DNA from: Trichoplax adhaerens
Lineage: Eukaryota > Animalia > Placozoa
DNA: 64,000 nucleotides
Assembly: GCF_000150275.1 (NCBI RefSeq)
Contig: NW_002060949.1
Coordinates: 4,222,449-4,286,448, forward strand
Reading direction: 5' to 3'
A model generated the notes under the pieces. The model had not been told where the DNA came from. It searched no databases and worked only from the letters and a program-made list of their open reading frames with translations. Positions 15,997 to 33,100 of this stretch are shown one piece after another. The position numbers were made by a program, and so were the translations under genes. Each line of letters starts with the position of its first letter. The stretch's first letter is position 1.

Positions 15997-18134
15997 TGAA
16001 TAAAATTACTATGCAGTTTCTATGGTGATTGCACGTCAATCGTTGGTGAACATTTCGTCAACGTTGACCTAGTAAAGTATGTGCAGCAGCCAAAAGCTAT
16101 TCTCTATCATTGAGAAAGCTACCGATATTTCTGGTAGAAATACCCTAAACTGATTGAATACTGCCATATTCTGTCCTCTTGATATTTCTTCGTTCAAGCT
16201 GACTATATAAATAATCGCAAAATTGGCAAATTATCAAATCAACGCCGTCTAGGTAAGTCACTTTCAGTCCGAACTGCTTTGTTAAGCTCAAAGGGTTATC
16301 ACTTAAATCGAGTCAATTGGTCCAATACATATGTATGGATCATGATGACTCAATGCAGTAGCTGGCCCAAATTAATATCAACAAAACTTCAACTTACAAG
16401 CATGTCAATGTAGGACCATATCTCCCCCTAAAAATGAATTACAAACTTTCAATCGAAATCAAATCGCCTTGACATGCAGAAAAGAACAAAGTATTCTTGT
16501 CGTGGATGTCATTAGACACAGTATCTAGCATGAAGATAGTTTAATCTTGGTGCAGTAACCGATTAATACCATATCGTTCACTGTGTTGATATCACATGGC
16601 TCAAAATGCGTAGCTTATAGAAAATAACAAATAATATAGTACGCGCAATCCTCAGATAAGGTTACATCTTTTACAATGATATTTTGGTCGTGTCATGATT
16701 GTTTATATAGAGTAGCCAATTAATCCAATACTAGGTAAAAGTATAACATTAAGTAATTAATAACGATTATAAATTCTTAGCGATTACTCTATGCTTTTCT
16801 TTGTATCGGCAATGACAACAATATCACGGCGATTGCATTTCTTTTCTCATTCATAGAAAATAAACTAAACGTGTCATTATTTAAGCATCGGCATGACACA
16901 GCACATTCCAAGAGGGTAGACTCTTAAAATACCTACAACAGCTCTCATCTTGGATCTTTAACCTTTCTTTTTGTATGTAGATGTATTACTTAAGCAAAGA
17001 TATCATTTAAAACAACGAAGATACTATTCTAATCGTTATAGTATAACTTATAGCTATTACTTTTCCACCCCTACCAAAGAGGTCACGTATTATTAAAGAA
17101 TTTATTAAATAGCAATCTATTGTAATTATAGAATTAGCTCATTTTAAATTTAAAGCCATTACTCATGCATCAATAACATTGTTACAATCTTATTTTCAAG
17201 GTAATAATCATGCTAACATAGATACATGAATTATAACATACAGACAAAAAAAATTATTTGCCATTTGCAATCACGCTACTTCCAGAATTAAGAATAGACA
17301 CAAGTATAACTGAATCTCTCACTTTCTTACAAAGTAAGTTTGGATGCAATTTCCATTAAAATTGCTTATAAGTTACCAATAAAGTTGTATGCATAACACT
17401 TTATTCATGGCGTGTATATGCAGGTAAAATTTTATCCTCATTACGTAGCGAAACAGTTCCATATGTTATCAGAGTTTCTTAGAAGCCACAACTCGCAAGC
17501 ATAGTAGTAGTAGAAACAGCATAGATCTAGCACGTAATTGTCATATGAAGCATACTTTATTATAAAGGAATTCCAGTTAAAATGCAATAATATAATCAAG
17601 GCATTGTCGGGAGATAGCAATTTAAAAATTACAAGTTTACCTCGTATCAAATTCATATAAAATGAATAGCTAAGATAATAAACAGATTGCACTTTATGTT
17701 ATAACCTCATAATAAATAACTCTAGATTAGCTTTTATTACAAGGATGCTAACATTAATCCCTTAACTATATTAGTTCACTCGTCTTACAATATTTTCACT
17801 AAATTAACTAATAATCGACATTATCAGATTATCCATTTTGATTTGCCTACTTCTCCTTTGATATACCTTCAAGATCAACACGACTAAAATTAAACAGAAA
17901 CTTTCGCACATGTTATTTAACAATTTTTAAATTCTGTACCCATAAGATCTTAGCCTTTAATATAATAATTGATGCTGGTACTAATCTGCATAACAAGTAT
18001 CTTACTTAGCAACAACATATGATGTTGGGATTAAGACTCCAATACTCGTATGTTTTATAAATAGCATTAGTATGAAATTATACATTTTTTATGACGATTT
18101 TAACAAAAATTTTATCTTTAGATAAAAAATAATC

Positions 18135-21100
18135 ATGTTTAAGGCCAAAAAAGCGAAAGCCAAAAAGAAAGCAAAAGCGATTAAAACCCCCACTGCCGAT
18201 ATTGATGACTTTATTCCAACAGAGCAACAAGAGATGCTTTATCAACAACAATCTAACATCGGTTATGACGAAAACATAGAAGACTACCAACAATCACAAA
18301 TGAGTTTTGATGATCCCAACTTCAATTACGCTCAAGATGAAGATGACTATTTGCAGGAACAAGAACAACAGAATTTCGTCGAATCCAATATTATGCAAAT
18401 GGAGAATATTCGTAAATTAAGTATTGATGATGGTTCCGATTTCGGCGATGATGCCACCGAATGGAGCGATGATGACAGCACAGAATTCAATCTCATTGAA
18501 ACTCTTAAAGTGTTGGAAGATTTAAATGGCAAAAATGCACTTCAGTTAACTCAAATACAAAATAAAAGGGTAAGAAATGGTTTAATATTATAATTTTGAA
18601 GGTATTACGGTGTAGTAAGCAATTAGAATGGATAACTGAATAACTAACAAATAGCTAAATTGTATAAAAATTTTATCAATTCTAGAAGACCTGTAACTAT
18701 CTTATAGTAATCACCCATTTTATAAAATTAATATATACAACAGGATGATATTGCCTTTGAAATCAGCCACAAAAGAAACATGATACTAGATGGATATGAA
18801 AAGTTAACTGATATAGCCCTTGCATCTATCTTAGAACACTCAAATAGTGCCCTTCATGTTCACAAACTTAGTGCCATAGGATGTGTACATTTGACTGATG
18901 CATGTGCACTTTTAATTGCAAAGTATTGTCGAAATCTTAAAATTATAAACTTAGATGGCTGCAAAAACCTGACATCTAAAGCTTTGGATGTACTTATATC
19001 TCAATGTGAAAAATTAAACGATGTATCAATGAAAAATTGCAATTTAAAACGCTTACCACATCAATTAGTTCAAAAACTAAGAGCATGGGAAGTTAAAGCA
19101 AAGCGGCAAATCCAAAAAAAATCAAGATACCCGAGCAAAAAAAGTCATGTCAGATCTTTATCGCCATTAACTGAACAGACAGACGACTCTGACCAGCCAA
19201 AATTAAATTTAAATGGTAACCCAATGGCAGAATGTCATGAAGACGTTTTCAAAGCTGACGATGCTTTATCCATAATAAGATATTTAACTAGAGTTGAGAA
19301 GTCCTTGACTTATCACTACAGGTTAGAACTAGAATAGCAATTATCATTTTGTACAAGTTTTTAGTACCATAATGGAGAAGTAAATAAAAATAACACATAG
19401 ATGTCAATTTTACTGCATCTTGCTATTAGTTACTAAGTAGAATTGAGTGTAACTGTAGCTTTTCTAATGTATTAATCTTGCACGTTAGGATTAATGTTTT
19501 TGGATCCGAAGATTCCCATAAAAATTTTGTCATTAGTAAACTGTTGAATCTTAAAAATGTACCCAATGCTAATGAATTTACCGTTCACGATTGGCAACTA
19601 AAAGATAATAAACAGCGAAAGATTGTAACAACTGTAGTCAATTTCGGACTTGAGGTAACTTATACATTGTTTGTAGAAAGTACTTGAAAGGATGATCTAC
19701 TATCAAATTTTATTGTGCTTCTACACGTACAAATTTAGTACCATTACTAAGAATATGAAATTGAATATTTTTCAGCAACACAACCATATTTTTGTCACCG
19801 AAGGTGCGATCAATGTCATCGTAATCAATGTTGACAAGCCTTCGTTTCTGAAATGGATTCAATTAGTGGAAACTAAGGTAACAATAAATTAACAGTTATG
19901 TTAGCTAATGAAAAATTACATTATCAATACTACGCTAAATGATATCATCGAAAATTTAATTGATTTAGATTTGTATATATATATGCGTAAACCCATCTAT
20001 AGGGTGTAATAGATATTGACGCTATCGAATTGATATCATATTAATGTGAATATCCATTTCTCAATAATGTAAAGAAAAATTTTATATTATTTCTTCAGTG
20101 CATGTCACTCTAGAACGAATCAATAAAATTATCTTATAATTTTAATAGATAAAACATTTTTTTTTAGTATCCAAGCAGCTGCTTTATTATTGTCCTCACA
20201 TATGCAAGATCATCTAGAACTGCGGAAGAAAGGATGAATATAATTAAAGATAAATTACAAGATCAAAAAGATTTATTTATACAAAGACTAGAAGCACTAG
20301 TCAATAATTCTATGTCTGAGTAAGTCACGATTATTTCCCATATAAATCAGTTCATATTCGTATTACAGAGATTTAATAGACAGCGCTATCAAAACAAATA
20401 AAAGTTTAGGATTCAAAAATAATTTAGGAAAAATTTATAACGTGAACTTTTAGCACAAAGGAGATAATAAAAAATATAAACAAAACAAAAATTAAACTCT
20501 TAAACATCAGGATTTCGATAGGCTTTTCATAATTTTTTGTCTAATTACTGCATTACAGCTGTGCTTTCTTCTTTCTCAATAATGATTACTCCAAGTACTG
20601 CATTTACACAATTAATCAATGTTAAAAAATAAACAATTACGGTACAATTCTTATAATTTATCTTATAAAGTATTGAAAATTTCATGCAAAATGATGTAAT
20701 TGAGCAAATTACATAAGTAAAATATGAATTTATTATGTTCATTTAAAATTTTACGAGAAAATTTTTACCGAATCTGTAACAGATTTGCTAATAATAACGA
20801 CTTATATATAATTATAAATACTAGTAATATGGTAGTATTTATTAAAAACAGATATAAATGTTTGCCTTTCTTATGTTGTTGCCTTCCACCATTTTTTAAA
20901 GAGGAGATCAGTGGGACCAAGAGACATGTAAGACCTTTTTTCAACAGCAAAAAATCTCTACAGTTAACCATTTGCTTTGGTATGGCATGCCTCAAATTCA
21001 TAATTACGTCATGGTTGATAGCAATAATGGAAAGGTAATCAGATTATGTTATTAAGATGACATCATAGATAACTTCAATAAAAATTAATGATCTAAATAT

Positions 21101-24100
21101 TACCGCATCACCTAAAAATCATAATAATTAATTGCTTATTGGCTTTAGCTAACAATCAAGTATTATTATTGTTTCCTAACCTAATTAAAAATTATCCTTG
21201 ATCGTGCTATTTCTTGTCATAGTAAATATTTCTATAAATTTAAATAAACTAGTATAAATAGAACTATGATTACAATAAATAAGATCGCTAAGCTAACCGA
21301 TAGGATAAAAATTTACGATGTACTAATTCTTTTAAGTAATTTCTAAATTATATTTCTGGAACTTTCTGACGTGTAATTAGGGAATTGAGGGTGTCAGACA
21401 AGAAATAATTCAGTGCATTAATGCAATTTTCCAGCGAAAAGACTGCGATCTGAATATAAATGGAGTAGCTAAACATCTATACTGGTCAAGGTTTCGTGAC
21501 GAATATAGCAAGTTTAAATATCAAGCCAAAAAAAATCACAATAATAACAAGCATATCTACTTTTTAAATGATCTCATATCTGATTTACGCGAGGATGTAC
21601 ATAAGAGAATGGATAAATTTCTATTTGCCTGTGAGATGCTTCATAATTCAGTAAGCAATATAATGATCTTGCCTCTTTTTTCTAATTTCATTCATTGTGT
21701 GTGCCGTCTATTATAGTACTTTTTGATATTCATAATATAGGGAGAGCTCTTTATGACAAAATATAACGACCAATGGTATTTTATACCGGATTTAACATGG
21801 TTATATGAGAGACTAACTGAAATAGGGCAAGGAATAGTGCCCAATGTTGCTATTCCCGAAGGAGTAATGCCACTCACTTTATATTATATAATTAAAATTA
21901 ATTTCTCAATACCTTATTTAGAAATTAAGACATAAATAGGAATGAAACAATTTTTTCATTTAATTTCATATCGATTTCTAATCAAATATCTCTGTAGGAT
22001 CAAATCATTATTAATCTAGCAAAAAATGCTGGAATATCAGCTGTAATGTCAAACGTTATCAATTTAACTCGCTCATTAACTGATCTGACATGTTTACCAA
22101 ACAGTCCTGCCAAACCGTTGGTAACTATACGTTAAAATTTTTTGTGTATAATTTGGCTACTAATATTACCCAAAATAGTAAAGCAGTTAATATTCGATAC
22201 TTTTACAATCTGTACCTAACATATTATCTAAATACAGTGCTCAATATATTACTTTTCTGAATAATTTTAGACATTGTTGTGGGAAGATTATCACCCTAAT
22301 GAATATTTTTATGAACAAACTTATGAAATAATCAGTTACAGTCCTGCATCGTTGTCGGTTTTAAAGCAAATTCAATCTAATCTCATTCGGCTAACACAAA
22401 ACGTTCACCATTTATGGAATGATGGATTGTTATTCAGTTTGGGCTACGTAGAATGTCTACTATTACTCATTGAATCTGAATCAACTCCAACAGATGACGG
22501 CTTAGTCAGCTTAAAAATTTCAGCGAGATGTAATGCAATACCTGATGCGGATGCAGCAGAGGAAATACAAAGTGGACTACGTCAGACGTTTATTATGTGT
22601 TGCTACATCATTGAAGCAGCTTTTGAGCCTTTGCCAGGTATCGCAACTAAGGTTAGCAAAATTTAGCAGATATACCAATACATCACTTATTCTCAGATTT
22701 TTATCGATAAGATTTTTCTATTAAAAATTATTAAATTTGGATAGACAACGTTAAAATCTAATGTAGCCAAAGAAAATGACATTGAGGGACAATTAAATCG
22801 GCCTAAATTTGATGAAGGTAATAATTTAGGCACTAACTCTTAAGCTTTAGATCAATATAATTCGCTTTTCTAAAATCTAATAGGTGCATTTGGGTAATTA
22901 ATATCTTAATAGTTTACTGTTTAATGAAACAGTCTACGCTCTATCTGTGACAAATGTTGTAGGAATTGATGAAAAGCTTTATATGGTTTGCTTAAATATC
23001 ATAAATCGTTAATATCAATCGTTGAATCTTTCTTGTTATTTCATTCTAAACATAAAGTTGATATTCCTGCAATATGTGGTCACGAACTGGAAAAATCAGC
23101 TTCAGAGATAGTCTGCGTGCAATGTCAACCATATTCATCCGAAAATAACCAGCAAAATATTAACAAATATCAAAAAGAGAAGATGTAAATCTAATCGCTT
23201 TTCTCGTTAGATATGATATATAGAAACCTAATTTTGTATATCTTTGTAAATATTAGATGAGTTAATCAGTATCTTATTTTAAATACGCGTAGATAATCAA
23301 TTAAAACCAAATCGTGATTATGTATAATCATAAGTTCCCTTTTTTTCGATTGATCGATAGATCATCTTGTACTAATTGCGGTCGATGCAATTATTGTATA
23401 CAGTTTATGTCGGTAAGACAGCATAATATTAAGACTTTAAAAGTACACGTATATGATAAAGTAGGTCTGATTTATTAGAGGATAGCATTCTTTATATTTC
23501 AAAATCGAGGGAAAATTATCTCTAATTGGTTCATCCGTGAATAAACTAATACAGATTTTCATGTAAATAGGATGTACGTAAAGAAAGTGCTACTCCTGCA
23601 TTTGTTAATGACTGGTCCAGAGCTTTTAATTTTCAACAAATTGGAAATATCTTAAAACATCCGTCTGATAAGGAGATTATTGATGAAAGACAGGTTGTTG
23701 TATCTGATCTCAATTATAGTATTGCCGTTAACAAATATCCCTTGAATTTTGTAACTGGCCGGATTTTTCAGTTTACTATCTTGGATATCGCCAATGTTGA
23801 TTTTATCTTAGGATTAGTTACATCATCCTATGATAAAACATCCCGCCCTGGTTTAACAGATTCATCTTATAGCATCGTGTTTACAGAATCCGCTTTCTAT
23901 GCTAATAACCAAAATATGGGAAGTTTGGCTTTTGATATTGATCATCTTTGTCCCGGTGACCAACTCAGCATTATTGGTAGATATTCAGCTGATAAAAAGG
24001 TAAGGCAACGAGTTTGCTTCTAATTCTAATCTTAAAAGCTGGGTTGAATATAGTCTAGTACACTGTACAATATCATAGTCACCTGATTTGATATTGGTGA

Positions 24101-27100
24101 TGACGGTCAATATTTTGAAAATGTAAATTTAATCGATTCTAAGAATCCGGTTTCTAAACCAACTGCAATTGCAATAGTTGTATTTTCGAACAAAATTAAT
24201 GAAGTAGCGCTCAGATTAGTTTCCAAAAGTCAAACAATACAACATACACCTTTAGTTCAATCATTTCTTTAACCATTAATAGTATCTTATTTTTATTTAC
24301 ACTGTATGATCATAGAAGGAAATTGTATTTAGCAGAAATGGATTAGTACTGCTTGTCGTCAATGAACCTGACAATAAAGATTATTATCCGATAATCCATT
24401 GCGTTGATACCACCGCAGATGATAGCCGCATTATCCTACAATTTGAAGGCAATACAATTCCGGTAAGCTATATCTCATTAATTCATTATATTCTATTTAA
24501 AGCCGAAAATGATTAAGCAATTACCCTGTATAATTTTCGTATATTGTCAAATCATATATTGACTATTTAAGAATTTAGTAATTAATACAGTATACTCGAA
24601 ACATGGTGCCTGAGTTACATATTTAGTAGAACTTTTAGCTTCTCTACTAAATTAAGATTTAAAAGGGATTATTTGAATATAGTAATAATGATAATATTTA
24701 GGTTCTGGTAGTTATTCAGAAAGACGGGAATAAAATCACCATTACTTAACTTTCTAAAGCTCTTTGATAAATACATATTAATATTTTTTGCTATAGATAA
24801 CTCAAGGAGCAAAATTTGTCACTTGGGAGAAAGGCATGAGACTAGAGGCTAAAGATCGCTTGAATCCCAGCTTGATGTGTGTTGCGACGGTCGATGATGT
24901 CAATGATAATGAACTTTTAATCCATTTTGATGGTTGGACCAGAAAATATGATTACACTTGCAAGAGCACTTCAACAGATATTCATCCAATTGGTTGGTGT
25001 GAGAATAATTATCATCGGCAATTGGAACCCCCCAAAGGTACCTAAATATTTACGTTAACATCTACGATGACATACGTATTGCAATCTCGGCTAGTTCTAA
25101 TGAATTTAACCTATAATTTCTATGAATTATTTCTAAAAATTGCTTTAAAATCCAATAATTAGGTGACAATAAGCCTGACTTTAAATGGGCTCAATATCTA
25201 GAAAGTATTCAAGCTGTCGCTGCCCCTGTAGAGCTTTTTACACCAGTAAGATATATGTCTGCAAATCGTAAAAATTATTTTATGTTATTATGTGCTGACA
25301 TTAAATAATATTTTATTAAACCATAAATTAATAAAATAATACATACGGGTTAACGGGTATGCTTAAGTATCTTTACTTTTACTGAATAATAGGTTCAATC
25401 CTGGTCATAAGAGTTTAAAACCAACATTTATACATAGAGAATATGTACTTGAGATGTTTTTAATAAGCGATTTCACTCATCAGTAATATAAAAATAATAC
25501 TTCTTATGGATTACATGATAACATTTCTGATTCTTTAATCAGGAACAACTTGGCGAAAAAGATCCCGCGAAGATTTCTTTTTATGCCAGTACTCTTCAAA
25601 GCTGTACTAAACTCCAAGGAGATTTTGGAGGTAATTATAACAAATACACAAATATATTGTACAGTCCAATTGAAGATCTAAGAACGTCAGTTGCATACTT
25701 TCTAGAGAAGTACTAATCTATGCAATGAACAGATAAAAGAAAATGAAAGTATATTGTATAAGTTAGATTACATTTATAGTATTATATTAGGACAGTTGGC
25801 GGTTTAAATATATTTACAATACATGGGCAGCTGCTAGGACGTTATTGTAATTTATACATTGATTTCACGCCTATTTAGGAATAAAAGTGACTCAATCTCA
25901 TCAACACTCTAATTTTTTTAAATAATCTTGGTTAAAGTATCACGTGTACATCGTTTAATGAATGAAAAAACTGAAAATTCCATAAAAATATTCCTTGATA
26001 CCATTACCCGTGATACAGCATGTCCATTCATGCTCTACTTTCCGAAGTTAGACTCTTTTGAGGATCTAAATCTATTGAGCTGGAGATTTTGGCGAAACAA
26101 TTATAAAAAATATATTAGTCTACTATGTACTGGTTCAGGCAAGTATTTTCGCTCTCATATAAAACCCATAAGTCGTAAATTTGCAATTCTCACTTACAAC
26201 CAGTTAATTTGTCTTTATTGCTTCCTTCTGTTACTATTGCATAGGATGCTTTGATGCAAAGGAAATCGATATACATGGTTTTGAAGAGACTGGCCATCCA
26301 ATTGCAGGAGCTGACTGCTATTCGCAATGGAGCCAACAATCCATTGTCATTATATGGTTAATTAGCCATATTATTTTAGATTTAATTAAATTACAGGTAT
26401 CAAAATATAAATTAAACTGTAATTTACTTCCTCAATTAAATTATTTAACTATAATTACAAGCTTTCATTTACTTAAAATCTATGATATTAAAATCCTGTT
26501 AGTTGATAGCAAACTTAATGTAAATTATTTACTATATTGCGTTTTCTTGTATAAAGAACGTCTATAAAATATCTAGTAAAGCGCTCAGATTATTTGGTTT
26601 ACAAGAGGATAAAATCGAAGATGACAAAGTACGTACGGAAGAATCTAGTATGATATTTGCAATTGCACAATAGTTATTTTATTGCATATATCTAAGCTAT
26701 GGATACAGCTTTTACTCGATCGGAGAGTAAAAGGTAAAGTATTTGATTACGATCATCTAATATTTTCTACATATTTCTCCTGTTCCTATATTATAGTTTG
26801 TAAAGCAGGCAGAAGTAATTTTGAATATGATAACGACAATGTTGGATGTACCTGCACTCAAGATTTGTCAACGTCTGGATCGAAATTCGATAATGAAAGC
26901 TATTCCTGTATGTATAATGTCTCGAAATATAAGATTTAATAATTTATGGAATCATTCAATCAAAATAATTATTAACTTGAATTGCTGACGGATTAATACA
27001 AAGACAATTAATACTTTATTTTCTCAACGATTACGTACGAAATTATGGTATCCTATTCTTTCATCTTATACTAGCCCTAATCATCACAAACCACTTTGAT

Positions 27101-30100
27101 CAGTTTTCATTTCTCTAGTAATCAAAATTAATTATATTGACTGTAGGAGATAGAAAAGCTAACAGCTGAGGCGATAGAAAAGTGTGCTACCTGCAATGCT
27201 GTAGAAATTAAAGATAGATATGCTTCCAATAAGATTCATTATATTTGTCCAGCCCATACTTTGGCTATTGCTGGAAATGATCAAAATTTGGAAGAATTCC
27301 CTTCGGATACAATATTGTCACTGAATAAATTATGCAATATGAAAATGTATAATAATAAAATCGCCGAAATACCAGAGCAGGTCTTTCAGCAATTCTCGAC
27401 AACCTTAACTAATATTAATTTCAGTGGTAATAAATTAAAGGAACTGCCACTGGGAATGAAATGTCTAAAGAATATTCAACAGATATTTATAGGGTATAAC
27501 GAAATTACCAATATTCCAGAAGGGTTGCTTAGCGCTTTTTCTGATAGCCTGATATCTCTCGACTTATCCTCAAATTTCATTCGTCGATTACCGGATGATA
27601 TCGGAACATTAACCAACTTAAAAATGCTTAATTTAGCTTACAACCCCATTGATCAGTTAAGCAATAATATTGGCCAATTGAAATCATTGGAGGCTTTAAA
27701 TCTTACTGGTCACACTTTAACTTACTTGCCTGATACATTTTCCTCCTTGCAAAATTTGTCAAAACTGTCTCTTAATGGAGTGCCATGGATTCAAGTAACA
27801 TCGCAAGATTATTTGCATAATAAAATAATTACTAAAGAGACTATTGTAGATCTGTTGATGCATCCATCAGAACACGTAAAGGTTAATGCTTACACGAAAG
27901 AGGTAGGATATTTTCGGTTAACGAAAATTCGAGACGTAGATTAGGTCTAATTATAATTCTTTTTAAGATTAATTTTTAGTTATACACTAAACTGTTTGTT
28001 GTATTATTTAGCAAATTGAAAGTTTATTCGATGAATGTGATACCAATGCCAACGGTATCTTGGATACACAAGAAATGATTAATCTAAATGCAAAGTTATA
28101 TCTTAGCTTTCCTCGATTACAAGGCAGGAAAGAAAATGAAGAAAATGAAGGGAGTTTTCTGAAGAATCTTCAAAACTTTACGAAGTTAAAAGAGTTACAC
28201 CTGACGCACTTAGCGCTCTCCACCATCTCAGAAGAAGCTATAAGCAATTTAACCAGTTTAATCAATCTTAATTTATCTGATAATCCTAAACTAACTTCAT
28301 TGCCTGGTGTTATATCCATGTTACCGCTAAAAGAATTATCGTTACGGGGAACACACAGTCTAAAGACACCGCCACCAGAAATCAAAAATCGTGGGTTTCA
28401 AGCCATTATGGGATATCTAAAACGTTTACTGACTGGCTCCGTTGAGTGTAAAAGAACAAAGTTAATGATGGTTGGCTTAGGAGGCGCTGGAAAGACAAGG
28501 TTAGCAGGCAATGATTATTAATTAAAGAGTATCAAATGTCCTTTAGTATCTTTTAGAGTAGTTATTAAAAATTGACATCAATTTATTGCCATCAACCAAT
28601 TTTTGAAGATGGCTTGGGCTATTATGTATAACTTATTGCTGAAATTTAGTTTAACTGTAATTGATCATCGGTTTAATGATGAAATTTTTTACGCTACTTT
28701 AAGCTTGGTAGAAGCTTTGTTATCACCATATGGCCAAATATATGAGTCTGAAGCAGAAAGAGAAATCACAGATGGAATTGATATTGATACTTGGACAGTT
28801 AAAACTGATGAAGGCAGAATTGAATACAGTATATGGGACTTTGCTGGTCAAACATTGTACTACAACACTCACCAGGTAAAATTGATATCTTTGCCTACTT
28901 TATGTCCTAAGATTTAAGTTTTAATTCTGTAAATTTATCAAAACTTTCGCTAGAATAAAAATTAAGTACTTAAACTATTATTAACACCCGAAGTATCCAC
29001 ATTTCTCGTGTAGTTTTTCCTTTCCGATCGTGCTGTCTATTTCTTGGTATGGAATACGCGCTTAGGTCATGAACATGCTGGTTTAGATTTCTGGCTAAGT
29101 TCGATAGCTTGTCACGCTCCTAAAGCACCAGTTTTTGTCATTGGAACTCATTGCGATATGGTAGATTGCTTATAAGCTTAACATGATTTCATATCGTGTT
29201 GAATTGATTTTATTGGTCTTTTTCTGAGAGTCAAAATAAATTACAGTTATACATAAGCTTTGTTCCTCGTCATTGAGGAGTTATAAATAGGCGTAATTTC
29301 TATTAGATTTAAAGATCAGTTAACCTTGCCGTAGTGAAATATTTCCCTAAATGATCCTGTAATTAAGATTAATTATATCTTATCCCGCAGGTTTCTGTCA
29401 CTGAATTACCTGAAGAGGTCATGAAAAATCGATATCAGCAAATTGTAGGATTTCATTACGTTAGCTCATTTGTTGGCACGGTAAAGAACACGATTTTGCT
29501 TTCCTTTGAATGCAACTTGCAATCAGAAATCAATCTAATTTCCCATCAAATGATACTTAAGACCTGTTTATAAATGAATCTCTAGGGCATACCCAAATTG
29601 AAAGATTGTTTAATAAAAGAAACGCTACAACAAAAGTATATGGGAGAAAAAATTCCTCAAGTTTGGCTAAATTTAGAGAAAGCAATATTAGAGTATGTAA
29701 ATTAAATTATATGCTAGTAATTGTTTTACTTTTTGGCTACCTTTTATCTTTTATTATGAGATACTAGATAGCTTTAACATAAAGTTATGTTTACTGTTCA
29801 TTATCAAAGCTGGATAGCTTTATTAATTAATATTATACAAATATATAATACCTTTATAATTGTATTATTACGGCTGTCTATAGTTTTATAATTATAGAGC
29901 ATTTATGCCAAAATAGTAATTTTCAAATATATGAAAATTGGACTGGTTCCATAATACTATACAGTTATACGCGTATTCTAGATTAATTTACCTAATCACT
30001 ATCGCTTAGGTAATTACTATCTTCCTTAGTTTAGGCTTGAATAATCTTAACTAATCCTAATTATGCTTGAAATTAGGAAAGGAAATACAGTCAAAGTGCT

Positions 30101-33100
30101 TACCTGGAATGAAGTTACTGAAATTGCCAGTTCAATAGGAATATTTGACAATACGGAGGTATTTTATTCCCATAAATAAACCCTTCCACATTTTATTTAT
30201 ATAAAATAATTATGATATTATTCTCATTATTACATCATGTCTACCGTAATAAAGCTAGCAAATAAGGTATCTAATTCGCCTTAAAAATATATCTGGTTTT
30301 GCATCTTTATGATTGATAGTTAAGACAGGCTATCGGATTTCTCCATGATCTTGGCTCTGTACAACATTTTAATAATATAGCGCTAAGAGATAGAGTTGTC
30401 ATCGATCCACAGTGGATTGTTGATGCAATGGCTTGTGTAGTCTCAGTTCACGAAACACCTATTAAGGTAATTGGTATATACTTATACTATACAGTTACAG
30501 ATGCCATAAATTATTAAGTAAGCAGGATATATTATCATAATATCAGCCTGCTGTAAAAGAAACTATAACTAAATCTCCTCACCAATATGATTTTTATTGG
30601 TCCACAGGAAGGAAAGTTTAAACATTCCGACATGGCCAAAATATGGAAACAGTATGATAAACAGCATCACCAATGGTTATTGAAATTGACAGAACAATTT
30701 GATTTAAGTTATGCTTTACCCAAACAAGATGTTAATCTTGTTCCATGCTTGTTACCAGGAACTGAACCTAAGGTATAAAGATCTTTCTATTCTTACCATT
30801 AAATTATATCTTGCTTATCCAAGAATATCTCAAGTAACATCGTCTATTTCAGTTTGATTGGATTGAAGACATTGATAATAGTAATATCAAAGCGACGAAG
30901 ATGAAATACATATTCGAATATTTACCAGCAGGACTTTTTAATCGTGTACAGGTCAAGATATTAACGAAAATGTAATATAATTTTGATAAATATTCGTTTC
31001 TAAAATCATCCTCTACAATTATATTCTGCAGGTCAGGCTATGTAAATTTACTGACAATCAAGTTATATGGAAAACTGGATCTTTATTAGTGAAGAATGAA
31101 AACAAGGCCGTAATGAAGCAGTTACGGTAAAAAATGGAGTTGATATTTTAGTTATCTAAGTCCTTAAAATAAAAATTTTCTTAATTGTATTCAAACGAAA
31201 CGTCATAATTGAAACTTATGACCGAGTAACTAAGTACTCGTATATGATGCATTCGGCTGTACAATATTTTATTCAGAATTACTGTATATATTTAATTTCA
31301 TGATGTATGCAGTTGTAAAGTTATGTATATCGTATATTTTTAGGAATACCGATAACCTATTGATAGAAGTTCGCGGTATATCACCTAATAATCTTCTCTT
31401 CCTGATACATGAAATCTTGGAATCGCTAATAGCAGAAGCTTTTCATGGTATCTCATATGAATATGAGGTGCCATGTATAGATTGCTTGAATCAGGTACCA
31501 GATAAAGACTTTAAATTGTTTTAAATAGAGTGTGTTATAAATATATGTATTGTGTCTCTGTTGAAAAAATTGACATAAAATTGTTATGGGGTCATCGCTT
31601 AGGGTTCACGAGATCCTTCCATGTTCAGATCAACAAGAATACGACGAGCTTCCGAACTAAAAGCTGCGTTTTTGCAATGCGAACACAACTTTCATAGTGT
31701 ATCAATACATGAACTGCAATGTAAGTACAAATCTAATATTAAATTACTTGCAATTTATGATCATCTTATGCTATAATATCAGTAGCGATTTAGCTGCTGT
31801 ATTAGTCTACAATAATAATTTTAACATAGTACGACATAAAATTGATTACGACATCTTAGTGATATTTATAGCAATTACATTACAATTATTTTCCTTCTGA
31901 TCTGCCTAGCTGTTATTCCACCGGAATCCCCAAATGAATTTGACTTACATTTAAGGAATTCAATGCGAACTTTGACGAATCTTTCCGCTAGTTACGAATT
32001 AGATGCTTATATAAGTACTTTAGATAGTGATACTGGTGTACCAGCAAGGATTTACAATGATTTATGTTCAAAAGGATATTCTTGGTCAGTAGGATTTCCG
32101 TGGAATTACTATCGCCTATAGGAATATTTATGCTAAAGGCATCTTCGCAAGAAAATATGTATATTAAATTTCCGGATATGTTTCTTATCTTTTTTTCACA
32201 GTTATCGAAAGCAATCTGAAAGCGGCAGTCAAGATGCAGATTTTTTGGCTATTAAACAGTCTAATGTACGTGTTAATGATTCATTTTAAGATCAGTTACA
32301 ATATTCTGGAAATATAAATAATTGGCAAGAGTAACTTTACAAATCCCTATGAGACGTAAATTCCAGTAAACAATGCTTATTAATTATCATATAATAAATT
32401 AGTATAAATAGAAAAACTGATACGTTGGAAAACTTTAATTAACTACGTTACTAATACTCCTACTAATGACTCTGCTCAACCAAAGATTGTCATAATCTGT
32501 ATGACGGATGAATACATTAAAGATGAAAAATGTCGCTTGGAATTGAGCCACATCACAGCATTCTTGCGGAAACCTATTGCACTCGTTATTATCAATAATA
32601 GCTGGGAATGGAAAACAGATAGTATAGGCATGTTGATGGCTGACGAAGTAAGTTATAATTTGAAATTGATCTTACTTATCGAGCTTTCTGATCGTGTTTT
32701 CACTTTTTGATATCATTTTCCTTATTTATAAATTCTCTGACTATAAAATTAAAGGTATACATCGACATGTCAGACCTTGATAAGTATGATATCAAATTTG
32801 ATGAACTTGATAATCGAATTAAATTACACGACAAACGTAATCGCCAGGTAGACCAATAACTGCCGCAGTGTTCATTAGCATACCGTATCATTCTCTTTGA
32901 TGATCATATTTATAGTAAAAGCCATCGATGTTAATGCCAAAGTTAAATTATTTACATTAAATAGAGTTTATTACTATTGGTACAATTAGGTGAACTATGG
33001 TGATTGTTTCATTAGTTATTCATGGTCAAATTCAGAGCTAGCGTGCAAATTAGGGACGGTTCCATTACCTGGAGCTATTGGAAGAGGTTATAAATCTTTC

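Follow-up and report, generated by a model that had tools for sequence, protein, structure and literature searches.

A putative pseudo-ROC domain in the first of two predicted LRR-ROC-COR modules of a Trichoplax adhaerens ROCO gene

In Ras-like GTPases the residues of the motifs G1–G4 serve the contact of the G-domain with nucleotide and Mg, and how the ROCO proteins, LRRK2 included, are controlled by ROC, COR, and dimerization is still debated. For a dead copy of a catalytic module that regulates a live one, the pseudokinase–kinase tandem JH2-JH1 of JAK is the model. Among G-domains, class i pseudoGTPases have the G-fold and neither bind nor hydrolyze nucleotide, as in the N-terminal domain of AAGAB (PMC12490416) and the pG1 and pG2 domains of p190RhoGAP (PMC12490416, PMC5593906). 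Civiero et al. (2014, PMC4104024) give MBT, leucine-rich repeats (LRRs), and TIR among the domains of ROC-COR proteins of the placozoan Trichoplax adhaerens, and for three products (TRIADDRAFT_62404, 62498, and 57945) a Ras-like domain N-terminal of the ROC. Here we analyze a 64,000-nucleotide stretch of the T. adhaerens genome (the window; contig NW_002060949.1, positions 4222449–4286448, which is C1408 in our assembly G000), in which an earlier note had placed a pseudoGTPase ROC domain at 19489–21440. We find that five exons of this region (E1–E5, 19489–21650; table 1) quite probably encode a derivative of a ROC G-domain in which the nucleotide-contact residues have been replaced, which forms part of the first ROC-COR module of its gene, and which has been maintained by selection.

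The window has ~32% G+C, is intron-rich, and holds only short open frames; all searches and folds were made with single exons, and exon-level scores were chained afterwards. The gene, as read from its exons, is a large placozoan ROCO gene with two LRR-ROC-COR modules, of which the second (27147–31127) is intact: Pfam recognizes LRR_8, EF-hand, Roc, COR-A, and COR-B in its exons at 28.4–31.1 kb, with Roc on two exons. E1–E5 are preceded by LRRs and followed by COR-A-like exons and a COR-B of their own, and therefore belong to the first of the two modules. The end proposed in the earlier note falls inside E5, which extends to 21650, and its statement that the frame has no stops holds for the spliced reading only, in which five exons in three frames are separated by four stop-rich introns. 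The splice sites of E1–E5 are canonical (GT-AG) and their phases are mutually consistent, as read from the DNA and from the stop-free frames.

The sequence strings on which the domain had been recognized are all present: GSEDSHKN (19502–19525), VNFGLE (19637–19654), and LTYAR (20195–20209) for the motifs, and between them FTVHDWQL (19577–19600), HIFVTEGAINVIVIN (19785–19829), and LKWIQLVETK (19848–19877), the last followed by an intron and then by YPSSCFIIVLT. Where a canonical G-domain has GxxxxGK[S/T] at G1, Thr at G2, DxxG at G3, and THxD at G4, the window has GSEDSHKN, Asn, NFGL, and TYAR, and the orthologue from a second placozoan (below) has GSENSHKS, Ser, NFGQ, and TYTR; intact G1, G3, and G4 motifs are thus absent from the module-1 ROC of both. 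The positions of Ras G12 and G13 carry acidic or Asn side chains (Glu, and Asp or Asn), and His stands for the Gly preceding the P-loop Lys. It should be noted that "all motifs lost" went too far, given that G1 keeps its first Gly and its Lys, the orthologue reading GSENSHKS, and G5 keeps its Ser; among the key residues of G1–G4, the P-loop Lys is the exception to the loss. With acidic residues at the G12 and G13 positions, His before the Lys, and Asp and Gly gone from G3, Thr from switch I, and Asp from G4, Mg-GTP binding should be abolished. We infer that GTP binding has been lost, and the domain would then count as a class i pseudoGTPase as described for AAGAB.

That this segment descends from a ROC domain follows from a motif-bearing paralogue, from its placement on a profile of bacterial ROCO proteins, and from the COR-B fold encoded downstream. 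The paralogue lies 2.7 Mb away (C1408, 1555650–1578000; L069–L071) and was found as a weak match in a six-frame search with E7 of our own-genome assembly (105,631,681 bases in 1414 contigs). It is colinear with the window along the whole gene, through LRR0, E2, E7, the Cys-rich exon, SPRY, MBT, and the second LRR block, and on through EF-hand, ROC2, COR2, the exons noted earlier as TIR, and the C-terminal exons. Its intron positions and phases over E0–E6 are those of the window: an Arg codon is split at the phase-2 end of E0, E1 and E2 comprise 55 and 34 codons, E3 runs from phase 0 to phase 2, and the agreement extends to the later exons. Similarity between the two loci reaches z = 19 for E0, 9.5 for E2, 6.0 for E3, and 11.9 for E7. 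The paralogue E1 reads ..INVIGNRGVGKSTF.., with a canonical P-loop GNRGVGKS where the window has GSEDSHKN; its match to the bacterial ROCO profile has P = 3.5e-6, and in Pfam it finds EF-Tu, septin, and Roc at E = 0.004–0.01, with Roc at E = 0.01, below the cut-off. The paralogue E3 reads ..ILVGTHAEE.., a ROCO-type G4 with Glu for Asp, in which GTHAE lies on the LTYAR of ..FIIVLTYARSS.. in the window. The G3 of the paralogue is also noncanonical, being without DxxG; an extra paralogue exon that would bear a G3 ("..NIIFAG") was rejected, as its phases do not fit. Taken together, the boundaries and phases, the exon similarity, the P-loop, and the GTHAE motif identify the window E1–E3 as degenerate counterparts of ROC exons. 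Identity between the two loci is 45–82% in module 2 and 20–35% in module 1, which means that module 1 has changed several times faster since the gene was duplicated. Six-frame searches of the genome with the paralogue E1 and E3 revealed no third copy.

For the profile placement, a ROC-COR profile was built from 33 distinct intronless bacterial ROCO open reading frames (ORFs), mostly cyanobacterial, and compared by hhalign with window-plus-orthologue alignments of the module-1 exons. As positive controls, the Roc exons of module 2 gave P = 8e-11 and 7e-14 and its COR-A exons P = 7e-8 and 3e-9. E1 (residues 3–53) lands on columns 11–66, which aligns GSEDSHKN with the P-loop consensus and NFG with DFG (P = 0.09); E2 (residues 4–32) lands on columns 76–106, the same place as the true ROC exon R3 (P = 0.014, a score reached by 2 of 130 shuffles); and E5 (residues 1–43) lands on columns 153–187, which cover alpha5 and the start of COR-A, the latter aligned to residues 25–43 (P = 0.10). 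A colinear E1-E2-E5 chain of the observed score occurred in one of 130 column-shuffle sets, and shuffles that lay on the observed diagonal and scored at least as high as observed numbered 0/130 for E1, 0/130 for E2, and 1/130 for E5. With the paralogue added as a third sequence, the E1 alignment covers columns 11–68 at P = 1e-6, a score dominated by the paralogue P-loop, though the alignment continues through G3; the three-sequence E3 alignment lands on columns 110–120 with a weak score.

E7 was folded by AlphaFold2 with the orthologue as second row of the alignment, giving a model with a beta-alpha-beta4-alpha layout (predicted local distance difference test score, pLDDT, 72.5; predicted template-modeling score 0.63). 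Foldseek returned nothing for this model at E <= 1e-3, and the COR of the Chlorobium tepidum Roco (CtRoco) stood only at rank 6, yet had the best TM-score. Re-ranking by VIA-align placed two chains of the C. tepidum Roco on top, 3dpu_A (Z 11.1, root-mean-square deviation 2.0 Å over 94 residues, chain positions 790–889) and 3dpt_B (Z 11.0), ahead of the next unrelated chain (Z 9.4); COR-B of LRRK2 (1678–1809) reached Z 8.1–8.4 and LRRK1 Z 7.5. On this modeled structure E7 is assigned the COR-B fold, and its counterpart in the paralogue falls on columns 342–378, in the COR-B part of the profile (P = 0.003). To our knowledge COR-B occurs only downstream of ROC-COR-A, which strongly limits what the segment from the LRRs to E7 can encode. 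The intervening COR-A-like region is ~138 aa long, and its length and the motifs recognized by eye fit COR-A.

The orthologous locus of a second placozoan was retrieved as Logan contigs (L001–L004; runs SRR30664515-17) by word searches with the neighboring longer exons; a word search with the E1 frame found nothing. By tblastn these contigs contain all exons of E0–E7, with all splice sites in the same positions, identical lengths of E1–E5, and neither a stop nor a frameshift in E1–E5. Amino-acid identity of the exons is 50–76%, compared with 43–53% identity in the introns. Pooled Nei-Gojobori estimates are dN 0.24, pS 0.63, and dS at least 1.4 (saturated), for an omega (dN/dS) of ~0.18, and single exons range from 0.10 to ~0.5 (table 1). 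The module-1 ROC is thus under purifying selection, as the earlier note had supposed: the ratio is low, and splice sites and exon lengths have been kept while the introns diverged to ~50% identity. Frame-disrupting mutations in orthologues, by which the earlier note would have been refuted, are absent here, and a segment whose frame, splice sites, and lengths are kept in this way is no decaying relic. The motifs are equally degenerate in the orthologue (GSENSHKS, NFGQE, TYTR), from which the degenerate state reads as old and common to the second placozoan lineage; the window gene resembles its orthologue far more than its paralogue, which places both the duplication and the loss of motifs from this copy before the two lineages separated. 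The same longer exons retrieved two metagenome contigs, L005 and L006 (ENA ERZ23499115 and ERZ27263980), apparently placozoan DNA within metagenome assemblies, which carry an E0 orthologue at 56% identity and end 13 bases into E1 (R-INIF..).

Several results weigh against a ROC origin of E1–E5. No module-1 exon matched any Pfam family at E <= 1, Roc, COR-A, and COR-B included, although module-2 exons did match Roc as a control; PDB sequence searches with two-species profiles of E1 and E3 gave chance matches only; and in Smith-Waterman comparisons of every module-1 with every module-2 exon no expected pair rose above shuffles. The claimed alignment of the strands and helices with the intact ROC of the window accordingly stands only in part, as it was made by eye and passed no chance test on its own, but the same residue equivalences emerge from hhalign against the bacterial profile and from the motif-bearing paralogue. 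Profile alignment to ROC, which the earlier note had put forward as a check, gives colinear placements of E1, E2, and E5 on the ROCO profile, each with a weak score, and no match of any module-1 exon in Pfam. Window-plus-orthologue alignments of E3, E4, E6, and E7 found no place on the ROCO profile, which counts against the reading for E3, E4, and E6; E5b, E6, and E6b had no significant Pfam or profile match, leaving COR-A unproven; and E1 against the paralogue E1 is marginal (p = 0.045–0.07), albeit in register from the first residue. Folded alone by AlphaFold2, E1 gives a helix (7–22) and two strands (29–37 and 43–51), an alpha1-beta2-beta3-like order, at a pLDDT of 51 that is too poor for a fold search; the spliced E1–E5 may adopt a G-domain fold. 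ESM Atlas returned for E7 only subthreshold clusters of helical repeats, which were not used. Other searches were empty: E1 had no match among 1.84 billion representative proteins, a set apparently without the proteins of this genome; six-frame searches of the genome with E1 and with E5 found only themselves; a first scan of genome contigs with a true ROC exon found nothing; and a profile from 20 intronless Trichoplax ROC-COR ORFs had too little power to recover even the positive controls.

With window exons lacking significant family, PDB-sequence, or pairwise matches, and single-exon hhalign P values of only 0.014–0.1, the region could be an unrelated alpha/beta segment that resembles a G-domain through chance hydrophobic patterns; however, the paralogue has in the same exons a canonical P-loop, GTHAE, and a ROCO profile match of P = 3.5e-6, three exons are colinear on the profile, and LRRs and a COR-B fold flank them, making this highly improbable. 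We give hardly any credence to untranslated pseudo-exons of a decaying duplicate: motif loss is what decay would produce, but frame, length, and GT-AG sites are preserved through eight exons in a row, next to introns at ~50% identity and saturated synonymous sites, at an omega of 0.10–0.5 per exon. Improbable too, if less so, is a ROC-derived domain that is no empty scaffold and binds nucleotide or phosphate noncanonically, as a nonhydrolyzing pseudoGTPase or an NTPase of altered specificity. The P-loop Lys, kept in both species together with the first Gly, and the Ser that the orthologue also keeps (..SHKS) speak for it and against a complete loss of binding, making some phosphate or nucleotide binding conceivable; the P-loop remnant, NFGxE, and TYxRSSR are strongly conserved, and the paralogue has a full P-loop. 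Against it stand the side chains at the G12 and G13 positions, the His for Gly before the Lys, and the replaced G3 Asp and Gly, G2 Thr, and G4 Asp, with which Mg-GTP binding is unlikely.

A further alternative concerns the extent of the gene rather than the nature of the domain: the modules could be two adjacent genes, one with LRR, dead ROC, COR, SPRY, and MBT and one with LRR, EF-hand, ROC, COR, and TIR, in which case any pairing between them would be intermolecular. The ~1.8 kb between the MBT and the second LRR exon (25.3–27.1 kb) contain no conserved exon in tblastx against the paralogue, the two modules differ strongly in evolutionary rate between the paralogues, and the joining of both modules in one mRNA is a prediction from the DNA. 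Nevertheless we consider two genes unlikely, since order and orientation are the same in both paralogous loci, the open frame of the exon at 27147 lacks a separate start context, and MBT, LRRs, and TIR are among the domains listed for T. adhaerens ROC-COR products (PMC4104024, legend of fig. 1). A single gene for modules 1 and 2 is thus plausible, given the colinear duplication of the order of parts and those lists.

On the reading of E1–E5 as a dead ROC derivative, the domain would most likely stand outside the GTP cycle and would probably be a fixed structural element keeping the LRRs, COR, and downstream SPRY and MBT in position, and its COR-B may present a surface with which an active ROC-COR on the same or another chain can pair constitutively. 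More speculatively, and presupposing a single transcript, the dead ROC-COR could be the built-in partner of the live one, pairing with it within one chain through COR-B and ROC-ROC contacts in place of the homodimer that other ROCO GTPases need; we think this rather unlikely, but if true, the protein would be an asymmetric GTPase/pseudoGTPase switch, complete in itself and coupled to TIR signaling domains, and the paralogue with its P-loop would show this transition at an earlier stage. In either case the tandem would be a natural asymmetric system in which to ask what a ROC-COR scaffold does without a GTP cycle, the window gene and its paralogue bracket the loss of the P-loop, and the ROC subfamily would join the short list of pseudoGTPases. 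As family scans miss module 1 entirely, genomes rich in ROCO genes may have more dead modules than are counted.

Table 1. Exons of the First Module and, for Comparison, the Intact Second-Module ROC, with Conservation in the Placozoan Orthologue (Positions Are Those of the Window)
Feature	Position	Strand	Identity to orthologue	dN/dS	Assignment
E0	18777..19321	+	55%	0.15	FBXL/RNI-type leucine-rich repeats, then last LRR and linker (..LNLNGNP..IIRYL..) into the ROC-like domain; 3' phase 2, split codon giving Arg; start provisional
E1	19489..19654	+	69%, equal length	0.13	beta1, P-loop remnant, alpha1, beta2, beta3, G3 remnant; AG..GT boundaries
E2	19776..19877	+	74–76%		post-G3 segment, beta4, alpha3
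E3	20168..20319	+		0.51	beta5, G4 remnant (orthologue ATYTR), long helix
E4	20902..21034	+	57%	0.14	helical insert, beta6, G5-like ..VDSNNGK at 21014–21034; assigned by position, the paralogue's ..AVSNRKNDE, and reading by eye
E5	21381..21650	+	61%	0.17	ROC alpha5 (GIEGVRQEIIQCI..) and first part of COR-A-like region
E6	21741..21836	+	62%		COR-A-like (GELFMTKY..FIPDLTWL..); assigned by position and reading
E6b	21998..22120	+	conserved	~0.5	likely end of COR-A-like region (..LPNSPAKPL); AG/GT boundaries
E7	22271..22651	+	70%	0.10	COR-B domain of first module
Intact ROC, second module	28474..29480	+			exons ..–28499, 28704–28875, 29014–29160, 29391–29480
Intact ROC motifs	G1 28474–28497; G3 28834–28851; G4 29143–29157				GLGGAGKT; WDFAGQ; GTHCD

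Upstream of E0, the orthologue of which (product P0002) has a weak Pfam match to PF25372 (LRR_FBXL15), 18126–18590 is likely the first coding exon; it begins with the Lys-rich MFKAKKAKAKKK.., followed by an acidic Gln-rich stretch, and a gene of 129 aa is called at the corresponding place in the orthologous contig L002. The interval from the first COR-B to the second LRR block contains a Cys-rich (zinc-finger-like) exon (23350–23400), SPRY-like exons (23571–24513), and an MBT repeat (24797–25305); Pfam identifies the MBT repeat clearly (PF02820, E = 6e-28) and has no match for the Cys-rich and SPRY-like exons, though these are kept in the paralogue. Beyond the end of the ROC2 exon at 29480, the paralogue-conserved frame at 29538–29690 reads ..QKYMGEKIPQVWLNLEKAIL, a COR-A start; a "..FINESLGH.." frame in the same place, probably counted as ROC earlier, is less conserved. 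Elsewhere the assembly holds ~40 loci of intronless ROC-COR ORFs of 700–800 aa (e.g., L011 2413–4566(-), L016 2368–4662(-), and L026), a family in which GPxNVGKS (G1) and WDFGGH (G3) are separated by an insert of ~150 aa and the C-terminus is Cys-rich (CxxC..CxxC), and a full-length Roc match lies within an uninterrupted open frame of 4912 aa (C1412:9403573–9403917, minus strand).

Compared with described systems, ROCO proteins and pseudoGTPases are already known, and what would be new is a motif-degenerate ROC in tandem with an intact ROC-COR; a full-text literature search found neither a dead ROC nor a double ROC-COR protein described. With ROCO proteins such as the C. tepidum Roco, LRRK1, LRRK2, and MFHAS1, module 1 shares the order of LRR, G-domain-like, COR-A-like, and COR-B parts; E7 fits best on the CtRoco COR-B and also on those of LRRK2 and LRRK1, and module 1 of the paralogue has a ROCO-style G1 and a GTHxD-like G4. 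It differs from them in the replaced G1–G4 residues and the lack of a Pfam Roc or COR match, in a segment between beta5 and beta6 that is ~50 aa longer, in FBXL/RNI-type LRRs upstream, and in being followed by SPRY, MBT, and a second, intact LRR-ROC-COR with TIR domains. The T. adhaerens products TRIADDRAFT_62404, 62498, and 57945 also have two G-domains per ROCO protein, and Civiero et al. see the ROC-COR as a dimerization device accompanying a second G-domain; their extra domain, however, is Ras-like and without a COR, whereas the window has a full second ROC-COR with degenerate motifs. Like the class i pseudoGTPases, the window domain would be a conserved derivative of a G-domain with altered or missing G1 and G3, set in a multidomain protein and presumably serving protein interaction, but it derives from the ROC subfamily and still has its COR partner. 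In p190RhoGAP one active G-domain is combined with two dead ones, but without a COR or a dimer-dependent cycle. By analogy, JAK JH2-JH1 shares with the window gene the duplication of a catalytic module in one chain with a degenerate yet conserved N-terminal copy; its fold and chemistry are different, and a regulatory contact in the window protein would correspond to that of JAK as an analogy only.

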